From the NCBI RefSeq assembly GCF_052425735.1, contig NC_135771.1, positions 15,252,001 through 15,316,000 of the forward strand: a stretch of DNA of 64,000 nt. Reading direction: 5' to 3'. The notes beneath the pieces are model-generated. The model was given only the letters and a program-made list of their open reading frames with translations. It made no database searches and was not told where the DNA came from. Positions within the stretch are counted from its first letter, which is position 1. Every line of letters starts with the position of its first letter. Source of the DNA: Oculina patagonica. Its lineage: Eukaryota. This document shows, piece by piece, positions 26,643 to 31,559 of this stretch. The translations under genes and the position numbers were made by a program.

Positions 26643-29600
26643 ATGGCCGGAGATAGGATCTTAACAATTATTTTTCTGAGTGGCATTGCCTTCTTGCTGC
26701 TGGACAAAGGACCATGTCACGCGGCGGAAAGTGGTGAGTTGCTTGTTTATGCATATGATACCAAACATTTGTTCAGCAAAAAATTGCCCAAACAGAGTGT
26801 TGGCATCAAAAGGTAAACACTTTATTGAGATCACAGCCGGATGTGTGCTAAAACAAGGTCTGAAATAACTTGTATGTTCAATCAGTGGAGCTCAGTGGGA
26901 ACTTCAGAAACGATTTTCCAATAATTAAAAGGTCTGTTCCTGTGGCAATTTCCACCTTACGGTCCAATCTTCTACAGTCTTAACCATTCGTTCTTTTCAC
27001 ATTTTCTAAGCTCCCAAACAATTATTTTAAGGAGGTCCACAGTATTTTTTCTTTGAAATTGAGATGAGACTTTTGAAGATACAAATTCGGTCTAGAGGCA
27101 ACATTCGCCTTCACTGATGGTCTCAGGGAAACAAAACTCCCTGTTTCCCTTGCTAAATACTTAAAAAAAAGGACGAAGATGAATTCGTTGCGCGAGCGTT
27201 TCAACTCAAATCTATTTCATAAACCCCCCACACATTGATTAATGTTACAAAGGTTACGAAGATTGTGTATAAATTTGTTTGTATTTTACCTCTTGCCCCC
27301 CCCCCCTCCTCGATTAGTTCTGCAACTAGTACTAGTAGCGGGGGCAAGAACTCTCAGTTTGTAATCAGTATGTTCATTGTATGTATCTGTAAAATAAGGT
27401 CACATAAGTTTGTTTTAGTTTTTGTTACATTGATTCAACGGCTATTTGTAGGAAATCGGTGCTATGAGACCTTGGATTTTGAGGACTCGGAGCAGCACAG
27501 GTGCTTCGTTACAACAAGAGGAAAGATTTCATTCTCTTCCTTCACAGCCAAACACGGGACATTGTCTCTGAAATGGGAATCTGAAGACACGGGCACATCA
27601 GAACTAAGGTACAACAGACCATCATCAGCTCCTGCCATAAACAAACATCATCTACTGAGAGGAGGAATTAAGATGTGGATTTACAAGGAAACAGCTTCCA
27701 AGGGAAAGAAGCTGGAAGTAAGGTTCACAGACGACACAAGGAATGTCAAAGTGGGAAAGTTTACGGTCGACTTGGCGTTTAAAGGTTGGAGAGCAATATG
27801 GGTGAGATACTCTGAGTGCAAAGAACGCGAGGACAGTCTTAGATATCCGGCGGAAATTACAAGAGTCGACTTTGTTTTAGACCACCAGGACACAGTCTAT
27901 ATTGATTTGGTTGAATTCGTTGAAAACATGGCCTGGGAATCTCGAGACAAAATTGTTCCACCTTTCACAAAATTTGGCCCAAAGTATGACGCAAGCTATG
28001 TTTGGCGGCAAACGTATCGCTGGAGTAAGCAGAAACCGACTGAGCTCCCAAGTAGTATTGATTCTTCCAAGGAATTAAGTCTCGCTCACATAGAAAGTCG
28101 ACTGAGAAACTGGTATTGTGATGAGAAGCAAACCAGTTATGATTTCTCGGGAAGTCTCAGTAGACGTTGGAGTTCACTTACGCGAAGCATCGACAAGGCC
28201 CACATTGAATACGACAGGCTCGAGTTTAAAACATCGTCCGGTAAGAGAGTAATTCACGGCCCGCCATTGTTTTGCCTCAGGTGTAAAAGAGGAACAAGAT
28301 ATTATTCCACCTCAGATCCAACAAGGAAGTTTAGCTTTATAATGGCGAGAGTCCTGTTGCCTTTAGCATTAGAATTTCATCTAAGATCTCGAGGTAACGA
28401 ACTTACCGAGACAGTAAGGAGAGAGACACCTCTACTGAATTCCCCAGATCCCAACGTTATGCAAAAGTCACTCAGAAGAATTTGTGGAGGTCTCAAAACT
28501 AGACAGACTGAGTTTCAAACCTATCTTAAAGCGCAGGGAACGCCATACACAAATGCCAAAGTGCGAAGCTCCTTAGAGTACATAAACAAGGTACGTCTCC
28601 AAAGAGTCATCAATGTCCTGGATTACCTTGAGGACCAAGGATGGGCAGATGGGAGTGCCTTAGGTACGCTGGCTTACGAGATGCTACGAAGTCGGGCTGG
28701 TTATATGCATACTCTTTTCTTACTTAAAGACTCGTTACATATGGATAATGCGAACAAGACAAGATTGGTGAATTTGATAAACACCGCAAAATGGTATAAT
28801 GAATTTGGTGAAGTATATCAAGCACCATTTGAATACAGTGGAACAACAGCCGACCGAATGATCACAATAATGCTATTTCGGCTTTTGACAGTGCTTACAA
28901 TGCCCACTAATACAGAAGACGAAATAAAAGCAAGACAGAGAGATATGGAGGCTTTAAAACGATGGATGGATAACACTTTGACAATCAACAAAGCATTTGG
29001 AGGCGTCATCAAACCGGATTATACTGGTTTTCATCACATGGCATTCTACGCTTCTGCATATATACCACAGGCTTTGCACACAGCCGCACAGGTGCAATAT
29101 CTCTTAGAAGGGACGGACTATGCCTTATCAAACATAGCAAAAAGCAATTTACGACGAGCTCTTGAAACCGTCCGAGTGGTAGCTGTGAAATATTCATCCC
29201 CAAGCAGCGTGGGAGGACGCTTCCCCGACTACTCTAATGCTGTTCTCAGAAAAATCCTTCCTGCGTATGCATACATCAGCGTATCCCACCCGAAGGTACT
29301 ACCCACCACTCCTACCAAAGGAATAACCATCCCTGCCTTGACTAAAGATGCTGAGATGTTTTCACGCTTGTATCAGCCTTCAGAAGCCATCATCATTAAA
29401 TACATGGAAGATGGATGGGTCCATCCAGGGAAGTCGTACATGAACAGCCTTGGATCGCTGGAAATAATGCGAAAAGTAAGTACATAAAATAACCGCAGCG
29501 TTTAATGAAAATTTTGGAGAAGGAAAATTTGAATGCCTGTGCCTTATAATTCCAGATAGAAATGGAATATTATTATCTTCAATATATCTTAATTTTATAC

Positions 29601-31559
29601 ATGTTAGTGAGACGCCATCCTGGCAGTAACCGATACACTACCTCTTCTTTTGAATAAAAGGCACAATCGGTTGAGTATGAATTCGAAAAGCCAAAAGACA
29701 TATTCATATCTTCATTTCGGTGTTCTAAATCATGTCCCTCTAAATTATGTACATATGCGATAGAATATGTATTTTTCTTTGAGACTAAACAGCGACCAAC
29801 CACATTTGTTCCAAACTAACGGTGTTGTGCACTCCATAATTATGGTTTCTCTTAATTGAATAATAATTGAATAATTATTATTCTTAATTAGAATAATAAA
29901 CAACATGTTCACTGGTGTTCCTCTCGTGGTTGGTAGTACTTGAATGTTTTTTCTTTGAATTCTGATCGTTATTGGACTTAGGTTTTTTATCGTTTATTGT
30001 AAATGATACATTGAAATACAACTTTTCAATAAGTCGAAAAATACGAGTCCTCCCTTTATTGGATGGCTTTATAGCCACTCATAAAATTTTGGAATAATAT
30101 TTTTTTTTCGTCTTTCTTTTAGGTAGGTTCCATAGTCGCCACTGCTGAGAAATCTCCACAGGGCCATTGGTCCAAGAACTTTGCAGCCCTCTCAATTCAC
30201 CGTCGCGAAGACTGGGCTGTCACAGTTAAGGGTTTTAACAGGTTTGTCTGGGACTTTGAAGGCTCTACATCAAAATTGGAAAACGTCCATGGCATCTTTC
30301 AAAGCCATGGCGCGATGCTAATAGCAAACAGTGAGGAGGCACTGAAGGCTCACGACGTAAATGAGGGATGGGATTGGACGAAAATTCCCGGCGCCACGAC
30401 GATATCACTGACCTTGCAGGAAACGAGGTTGAAGAAGGAAAGAATTTTCAGTCCACTTTCCCTTGCTGGAGGAGTTGCCTTTAAAGGGACAGAGACTCTC
30501 TCCAGCGGTGCCTTTGGTATGGACTTTCACCAACCGGATTACGAGTTCTTGAATAAAAATCACCCTTACCCCAATATCAAGCTTTATTTTAAGAAGTCTG
30601 TGTTCTTTTATCAAAATCTGTTAGTCTGCTTAGGCAGTAACATTCGATTGGAGAACGGCTCTGGAAAGAAAGCACAAACAACACTCTTTCAAGACAAGCT
30701 GCTAAGAGGTTTTTCTCCATTCTTCATTAAAGTGGATGGCGCTCAAAAGGGTTGTTCAGATCCGTTGAACACTACGACACCATATGCTAGAAATGGAGAA
30801 AAAAATTACACCACTCTTGTTGACTCCAAAGGCAACAGCTACTATATTCCACGTTCAAGTGCCTCTAGTCTCAAGGTTCATATTCAAAATCAAACCTCCG
30901 AAACACCATCAGCTAAAACGTCACAAGGTTGCTATGGTACCGCCTGGCTTGAGCACAGTCCCTCGATTCAAAGCTATGAATACGCAGTCTACATCAAAAC
31001 ACCGTCATATCCACGCACGGCAGACGAAGCTTGGAGTTATCAAGAAAATGATACTCAAAGGAAACTATACGAAGTTTTAAAACAGGATGATGAAGCACAC
31101 GTGGTGAAATTTGGCAAGGCACCAGAACGCTGGTCAGTGATAAGTCCGTTGTATGGTTATGTGATTTTCCGGCCTACAGCAGCACTTCCACTGGGCCCAA
31201 TCATGACAGCGAACAAGCACTGCCGTATCTTGGTGTGTGACTCCACAAGCTACTTGTATCTAAGTATCAGCTACCCTGATCTGAATTTTCCTGACGCCAA
31301 GGTATTAAAGAGTTTGAAAGATATCAAAGCACGAGAGATGTACGACCTGGAAAGCAAAGAAATCCAAGTAGAGGTTACTCTGGCAACCAATGTGGAAACA
31401 AGCCTTCCAACGACACCCATGGTACACGGATCCCCAATCAACTACATACCAGTAGTCAAAGTGGAGTCTTCATCTTCTTCACCTCCAAACAAGGGTAACA
31501 AAATTGTCTTCGCCAATCTCAGGAATGGTTTCAGCGTTGAAATTAAGTTAAAAAAGTAA
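26643..31559 (+). CDS. Secreted chondroitin-sulfate ABC lyase-like protein (polysaccharide lyase family 8), copy A, about 1183 aa
   Basis: Exons 26643-26733 (signal peptide MAGDRILTIIFLSGIAFLLLDKGPCHAAES), 27452-29475 and 30123-31559 join in frame through GT-AG introns (3552 nt). Motifs typical of bacterial chondroitinase ABC: KHGTLSLKW, MWIY, FKGWRAI, LEDQGWADGSALG, IKPDYTGFHH..Y...Y, PSSVGGRFP, IHRREDWAVTVKGFN..WDFE, GIFQSHG, GWDWTKIPGATT, KKSVFF..LVCLGSNI, TTLFQ, GTAWLEH, YEYAV, LSISYPDL. AATAAA at 31690-31695. Confidence 0.9.

Follow-up and report, generated by a model that had tools for sequence, protein, structure and literature searches.

The 64,000-nucleotide stretch of the Oculina patagonica genome analyzed here, positions 15,252,001 to 15,316,000 of contig NC_135771.1 (assembly GCF_052425735.1), is referred to as the window, and its own numbering is used throughout. 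It contains, at positions 26643-31559 of the + strand, a gene that is likely to be a functional nuclear gene of the coral, encoding a secreted PL8 lyase of the chondroitinase-ABC type and descended from a bacterial gene whose capture predates the cnidarian common ancestor, with later expansion. Animals are generally held to degrade glycosaminoglycans (GAGs) by means of hydrolases; in this case a bacterial-type eliminase family is carried, expressed and expanded across an animal phylum.

The gene comprises three coding exons, whose junctions can be read directly from the sequence and whose spliced length of 3552 nt encodes 1183 amino acids with zero internal stops. Coding exon 1 (26643-26733) supplies the ATG and the signal peptide (MAGDRILTIIFLSGIAFLLLDKGPCHAAES) and ends in phase 1 at the GTGAGT donor of intron 1 (26734-27451), the acceptor AG of which lies at 27450-27451. 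Coding exon 2 (27452-29475) is followed by the phase 0 intron 2 (29476-30122), with a GTAAGT donor and an AG acceptor at 30121-30122, and coding exon 3 (30123-31559) closes with a TAA stop. Two long open frames, at 27235-29487 and 30276-31559, form the cores of exons 2 and 3. A candidate poly(A) signal, AATAAA, is found at 31690-31695, and transcript contigs extend to at least 31638. The GenBank model for the locus, a hypothetical protein of 1180 amino acids (ACROYT_G043912), begins instead at an in-frame ATG at 27370, inside intron 1, and omits exon 1. We reject this two-exon start in favor of the upstream start at 26643 because of the N-termini of orthologs and a spliced contig: the hydrophobic core of the exon 1 product, LSGIAFLLLD, corresponds by homology to LTGVALLLID in the N-terminal part of the Stylophora ortholog (P0022), with GNRC following in both, and a transcript contig joins exon 1 to exon 2. 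The signal-peptide exon, which is absent from the GenBank model, is a new detail of the locus. Its product has the classic shape of a signal peptide, and the protein is probably secreted.

The splicing is documented by transcript contigs of a run that bears the same species label as the window (X3; the RNA type of the run was guessed by the tool), which were aligned to 26400-31900. The joint over intron 1, from 26732/3 to 27451/2, leaves out 718 bases that begin with GT and end with AG, and a 341-nt contig, with 111 and 230 letters on its two sides, joins 29475 to 30123 across an intron that likewise has GT..AG ends. The contig that covers exon 1 extends 19 letters beyond 26638 on the upstream side; these match 25797-25815 exactly, and the genome continues there with GTAAGT. 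Because of this match and this donor, the intron predicted in the 5' untranslated region (UTR) is confirmed at 25816-26637, with its donor at 25816 and its acceptor AG at 26636-26637, and positions 25797-25815 represent a non-coding 5'-UTR exon of which only the 3' end is placed. The run is of low depth, one of its contigs lies within intron 1, and its contigs are 95-99% identical to the window (1-5% differences). A poly(A)-selected raw-read run (X19) yielded only 7 reads, mostly at a repeat at 31736-31900, and the 3' end of the gene is not seen in that run. The sequence-only reading that preceded this analysis had proposed an intact protein of about 1183 amino acids in three coding exons with canonical introns, a signal peptide on a separate exon, a probable 5'-UTR intron whose AG acceptor lies just ahead of the ATG, and a poly(A) signal. 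This structure stands, with the poly(A) signal as a candidate read from the sequence, and the two junctions that it had named for inspection, 26733/27452 and 29475/30123, are joined exactly as predicted.

The encoded protein matches three Pfam domains, all above gathering scores: Lyase_N (27469-27930; 1.7e-18) and Lyase_catalyt (28600-29289; 2e-46), which are separated by a helical linker in exon 2, and the Lyase_8 beta-sandwich (30195-30992; 1.7e-21) in exon 3, which also encodes a C-terminal beta domain. The only solved relatives found by sequence are chondroitin ABC lyases, namely 2q1f from Bacteroides thetaiotaomicron, matched by exon 2, and 1hn0 and 7eip from Proteus vulgaris, matched by the beta-sandwich region of exon 3. 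An AlphaFold2 model based on 36 homologs (predicted local distance difference test, pLDDT, 90.4; predicted template-modeling score, pTM, 0.91) is confident and is built of beta, helical and beta blocks, and its top Foldseek matches are once more 2q1f (2e-53), 1hn0 and 7eip. Lyases of the xanthan, chondroitin AC and hyaluronate types have far weaker scores and cover the model only in part. No match to Lyase_8_N or Lyase_8_C is found in the protein at E <= 0.01 in Pfam, and the NCBIfam chondroitinase-AC model, chondaseAC, reaches only 21 bits where its cut-off is 1000. Domain architecture, PDB sequence matches, modeled fold and active-site tetrad support the assignment of the protein to the chondroitinase-ABC type of PL8 lyases, which had been deduced from the letters beforehand; the domain search proposed at that time finds all three domains.

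The tetrad itself is defined by the reference residues His501, Tyr508, Arg560 and Glu653 in the Proteus enzyme and His454, Tyr461, Arg514 and Glu628 in that of B. thetaiotaomicron. In the coral protein the corresponding positions are His559, the second of the pair His558-His559 (29032-29037, within an FHH motif at 29029-29037); the catalytic Tyr567 (ASAY; 29059-29061); Arg620 (GGR; 29218-29220); and Glu751 (WDFE; 30258-30260). His559, Tyr567 and Arg620 align with His454, Tyr461 and Arg514 of B. thetaiotaomicron, Glu751 aligns with Glu653 of Proteus, and His559 is presumably also the counterpart of Proteus His501. These four residues, which include the candidates picked out in the sequence-only reading, are invariant in 20 of 20 aligned sequences (6 cnidarian and 14 bacterial), as is the equivalent of Asp398. 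The predicted enzyme would thus consist of an N-terminal beta domain, an alpha-helical toroid that houses the His-Tyr-Arg-Glu tetrad, and C-terminal beta-sandwich domains, and would cut uronic-acid-containing GAG chains by beta-elimination. In this predicted reaction the Tyr/His pair would abstract and donate protons, and the Arg/Glu pair would position the substrate and neutralize its carboxylate. The likeliest substrate would be chondroitin or chondroitin sulfate.

A further residue of the active site differs. His345 is given among the catalytic residues of 2Q1F (PMC12088678), and alignments place Tyr439 (28675-28677) at this position in the coral protein, such that the LDHE motif has become LAYE. 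Both copies of the gene in the window have LAYE, and the coral orthogroup to which they belong has either LYME or LAYE, whereas most cnidarian paralogs and bacterial relatives retain LDHE. The second-site histidine of the composite active site, a residue tied to broad "ABC" specificity, is therefore missing from this orthogroup, which touches the "ABC" label and leaves membership of PL8 intact. In work by Shaya et al. (2008), this histidine is reported to be required for cleavage of dermatan sulfate and dispensable for that of chondroitin sulfate. With this residue replaced, the specificity of the orthogroup may be narrowed to glucuronate-containing chains, and the substitution, a second new detail, hints at a restricted substrate range. 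It could also be taken to indicate an active PL8 lyase with a natural substrate other than chondroitin or chondroitin sulfate, such as hyaluronan-like chains or the acidic polysaccharides of algae, symbionts, mucus microbes or prey. PL8 includes xanthan, hyaluronate and even alginate lyases (e.g., 7r2x and 1j0m), and the closest bacterial relatives of the coral gene are uncharacterized members of marine-type polysaccharide-degrading lineages. We nevertheless consider a different substrate to be unlikely, as the best structure and sequence matches are two characterized chondroitinase ABC enzymes and the tetrad and Asp398 equivalent are conserved. Chondroitin is, moreover, made by cnidarians, including in developing nematocysts.

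The lyase gene at 26643 had been read as a single domesticated gene. It belongs instead to a family that has expanded and is spread across the cnidarians. Searched in six frames, the complete O. patagonica assembly contains about nine full-length loci with the same large exon (contigs C14, C2, C9 and C13), as well as several further, divergent lyase copies split into many short exons. The divergent copies lie on C14 at 11.98 Mb and 22.93-22.95 Mb, on C13 at 12.96-12.98 Mb and on C1781; in the phylogeny, the short-exon group (Oculina G044546 with Pocillopora) forms a separate hexacoral lineage, showing that the family has older, intron-rich members. Beyond Oculina, homologs are found in Stylophora, Pocillopora, Montipora, Nematostella (several), Actinostola, the octocorals Xenia and Paramuricea, and Hydra vulgaris, and many coral assemblies contain orthologs with 60-87% identity. 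Many of the cnidarian homologs have been automatically named "chondroitin sulfate ABC exolyase" in RefSeq, a circumstance that the sequence-only reading had anticipated. The locus is therefore an annotated member of a phylum-wide, already known family and not a new discovery, and what it adds is modest, since many other members are annotated as well.

The bacterial origin of this family rests on its relatives and their phylogeny. An exhaustive HMMER search over 1.84 billion representatives returned 1103 matches, of which the best 150 were inspected; within these, the cnidarian group has 36-87% identity and the bacterial group 28-36%, and every named eukaryote is a cnidarian. A GTDB genome scan provided 79 named bacterial loci from the Latescibacterota, Planctomycetota, Verrucomicrobiota, Armatimonadota, Bacillota, Bacteroidota and Endozoicomonas, none of them above 35% identity. 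Sampled members of the neighboring clades show ordinary bacterial gene contexts and the sorting tails of the type IX secretion system (T9SS). Three trees were constructed, all of them from cnidarian and bacterial-type rows: a FastTree phylogeny of 199 rows, a quick posterior mean site frequency (PMSF) tree of 89 rows, and a careful IQ-TREE analysis of 56 rows by 875 columns under LG+C20+F+G4 PMSF. In all three, the cnidarian rows form one clade (100/100), within which a Hydra-containing clade is sister to the anthozoan clade. When rooted on family members from Pedobacter heparinus, the cnidarian clade lies five supported nodes deep among bacteria, nested in bacterial clades supported at 98/95 and 100/99 in the IQ-TREE phylogeny. 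Its closest neighbors are Planctomycetota/Verrucomicrobiota-type sequences (98/95) at about 30-35% identity, the exact sister not being settled by the tree. Hydra nests among the basal rows P0161, P0299, P0145 and P0300, and the contig of P0145 bears an intron.

Most likely, then, a bacterial gene was captured once, before the cnidarian common ancestor, and was subsequently inherited vertically and duplicated. An ancient transfer from a bacterium to cnidarians had been proposed from the letters, with a cnidarian clade inside bacteria as its expected signature, and this is what the trees recover, given the Pedobacter root. After this single capture, which would predate the last ancestor shared by all living cnidarians, the signal-peptide exon, the 5'-UTR intron and the internal introns would have been gained, and in stony corals the gene would have multiplied to the roughly nine full-length loci plus the divergent copies. 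Endozoicomonas, a coral symbiont, was considered as the donor. Its homologs fall in the sister clade in the FastTree phylogeny; this placement is not repeated in the two mixture-model trees. The genomes of these bacteria, which are associated with marine invertebrates (L048 and L079), have ABC-type lyases of their own, which share about 29% identity with the coral gene, and a recent transfer from this symbiont is rejected because the identity is only at that level.

A different history has been published for cnidarian GAG lyases. Lyase_8 proteins are found in 18 of 21 choanoflagellates and, among animals, in sponges and cnidarians only, from which distribution ancestral retention was inferred (Richter et al., bioRxiv 10.1101/211789). 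According to this scenario of vertical descent, a GAG lyase already present in the choanoflagellate-animal ancestor survived in cnidarians (and sponges), while every other animal lineage lost it. The lyase genes of Salpingoeca rosetta, in contrast, have been described as chondroitin AC lyases, one of them common to filastereans and sponges, and both are themselves candidates for horizontal gene transfer (Matriano et al., bioRxiv 10.1101/2020.06.28.176636). The coral protein has the ABC-type architecture, with its 21 bits falling far short of the AC equivalog cut-off, the named eukaryotes among the best 150 of the 1103 matches are all cnidarian, and the cnidarian clade sits among Planctomycetota/Verrucomicrobiota-type sequences; vertical descent would also require independent losses in many animal lineages. 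We regard vertical descent as very unlikely. In our view, the shared Lyase_8 domain led the analysis of Richter et al. to merge two separate PL8 subfamilies, the ABC type of the coral protein and the AC type ascribed to the S. rosetta genes. The tree speaks against a reading of the cnidarian enzymes as relics of the first animals and points to ancient bacterial capture. Literature searches for cnidarian chondroitinase ABC, for a claim of horizontal transfer, or for nematocyst-proteome evidence produced nothing beyond these two studies.

That the gene belongs to the coral nucleus is supported by its surroundings. It lies on a 25.6-Mb chromosome-scale contig and has a GC content of 0.39-0.43, like the rest of the window. 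C9orf72-like exons lie upstream on the minus strand, and a rhodopsin-type G protein-coupled receptor (GPCR) and a Cys-loop channel lie downstream, in agreement with the earlier placement of the gene between C9orf72 and such a channel. The window also contains a second intact copy, on the + strand at 47998-53061 (exons 47998-48088, 48800-50823 and 51619-53061), which encodes 1185 amino acids and has 96-99% DNA identity to the first. The two proteins differ at 30 amino acids, and the ratio of nonsynonymous to synonymous divergence (dN/dS) is 0.18 throughout, which is purifying selection between the copies. Together with the introns, the spliced contigs, the host-gene neighbors and the matching GC content, this ratio bears out the domestication that had been claimed.

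Bacterial contamination, mis-assembly or a decaying relic would be an extremely unlikely source of such a gene. The start of the second copy directly after a gap of 500 Ns is what could be cited for an artefact, and, because the copy abuts this gap, the local arrangement may in part be the result of scaffolding or a haplotig. Contamination is ruled out by the spliceosomal introns, the spliced transcript contigs, the host genes on either side and the lack of any close bacterial match, all bacterial relatives being at or below about 35% identity; the intact reading frames under purifying selection and the orthologs in other coral assemblies speak against a relic.

The two copies form part of a larger repeat. 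A block of about 13 kb at 24339-37204, which includes the lyase, the GPCR and their flanks, is repeated at 45707-64000 with 96-99% identity, beginning immediately after the gap (45207-45706), and could represent either a genuine tandem duplication or a second haplotype that was left uncollapsed and was placed here in scaffolding. The flank of the second copy has an additional 5.3 kb (56613-61954) relative to the first. Across the catalytic half of exon 2 (28600-29475 compared with 49950-50823), synonymous divergence between the copies amounts to 0.16-0.20, against 0.03-0.04 elsewhere, an approximately fivefold local excess at an unchanged dN/dS, which suggests gene conversion or a deep haplotype. 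The exons of the Cys-loop ligand-gated channel (Neur_chan_LBD and Neur_chan_memb; 41059-43780) lie between the two lyase copies, and fragments of rhodopsin-family GPCRs follow each of them (33470-34162 and 54937-55365). Further upstream, at 13701-16331, is a retrotransposon of the long interspersed nuclear element (LINE) type with an 876-amino-acid open frame containing RVT_1 and zf-RVT. The repeat at 31736-31900, just 3' of the gene, has a very high summed contig depth (860-4800) in all three contig-based runs (X1-X3). It had been taken for a tRNA-derived short interspersed nuclear element, and ARAGORN finds no tRNA within it.

A number of points weigh against the view of the gene as an active lyase captured from bacteria. 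No tissue or cell-type expression data were found, and the lyase activity is a prediction. The X3 transcript contigs fit the first copy or the near-identical second copy without assignment between them. The nearest bacterial relatives are uncharacterized metagenomic enzymes, for which reason the substrate could be another uronic-acid polysaccharide. With regard to origin, nesting inside bacteria hinges on the placement of the root; as the best 150 of the 1103 matches were inspected, and many of these are unnamed, a non-cnidarian eukaryote could lie in or beside the clade; and the published interpretation (Richter et al.) is one of ancestral retention.

A bacterial gene captured by an early cnidarian would add one more case to the small set of transfers tied to cnidarian biology, and the family offers candidates, open to testing, for enzymes that turn over chondroitin during nematocyst formation, in mucus, in the calcifying matrix or in the digestion of prey. 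The sequence-only reading had put forward possible roles in nematocysts, mucus, skeletal matrix, venom or digestion. The family is also a possible source of eukaryote-adapted chondroitinases, which would be of practical interest given the wide experimental use of the bacterial chondroitinase ABC. It may be speculated that stony corals split the captured family into functionally distinct enzymes, with the orthogroup that has no second-site histidine, and whose main tetrad is kept under purifying selection, acting as a chondroitin- or glucuronate-specific remodeler of the animal's own matrix (the chondroitin of the nematocyst tubule, the mesoglea or the skeletal organic matrix) and the LDHE paralogs acting as broad-range digestive or defensive lyases. 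This division of labor appears unlikely at present; if true, it would mean that a bacterial gene became part of cnidarian-specific tissue construction.

Among known systems, the coral protein most closely resembles the chondroitinase of B. thetaiotaomicron (2Q1F), with which it shares the three-domain architecture and the residues His454, Tyr461, Arg514 and Asp398, and which ranks first both by sequence for the part encoded by exon 2 (1.3e-24) and by fold overall (the leading Foldseek hit, with a TM score by target of 0.76). In contrast to 2Q1F, the coral gene has introns and a eukaryotic signal peptide on its own exon, its protein is longer by about 160 residues (1183 compared with 1022), identity is only about 21% over the fold alignment, His345 is a tyrosine, and the activity is a predicted one. 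The chondroitinase ABC I of Proteus vulgaris (1HN0 and 7EIP) is similar in its PL8 beta-sandwich half (1e-35), in Glu653 and the tetrad positions, and in fold, whereas it matches the catalytic half less well (9e-8); this endolyase is secreted by a bacterium and has known activity on chondroitin sulfate, dermatan sulfate and hyaluronan, while the coral enzyme is known from sequence and model. The proteins named "chondroitin sulfate ABC exolyase(-like)" in RefSeq from Nematostella, Hydra, Stylophora, Pocillopora, Montipora and Xenia belong to the same family and clade, with 32-62% identity (up to 87% for unnamed coral fragments) and mostly signal-peptide-like N-termini; their names are automatic, the literature searched contained no paper characterizing them, and the orthogroup in the window departs from most of these paralogs at the His345 site. 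Finally, the GAG lyases of choanoflagellates and sponges (S. rosetta EGD79853 and EGD79387) are likewise PL8 proteins with a Lyase_8 domain and a proposed bacterial origin, present in animals that branched early and in the close kin of animals, but they are described as AC lyases, of another PL8 subfamily, which would set them apart from the coral protein.

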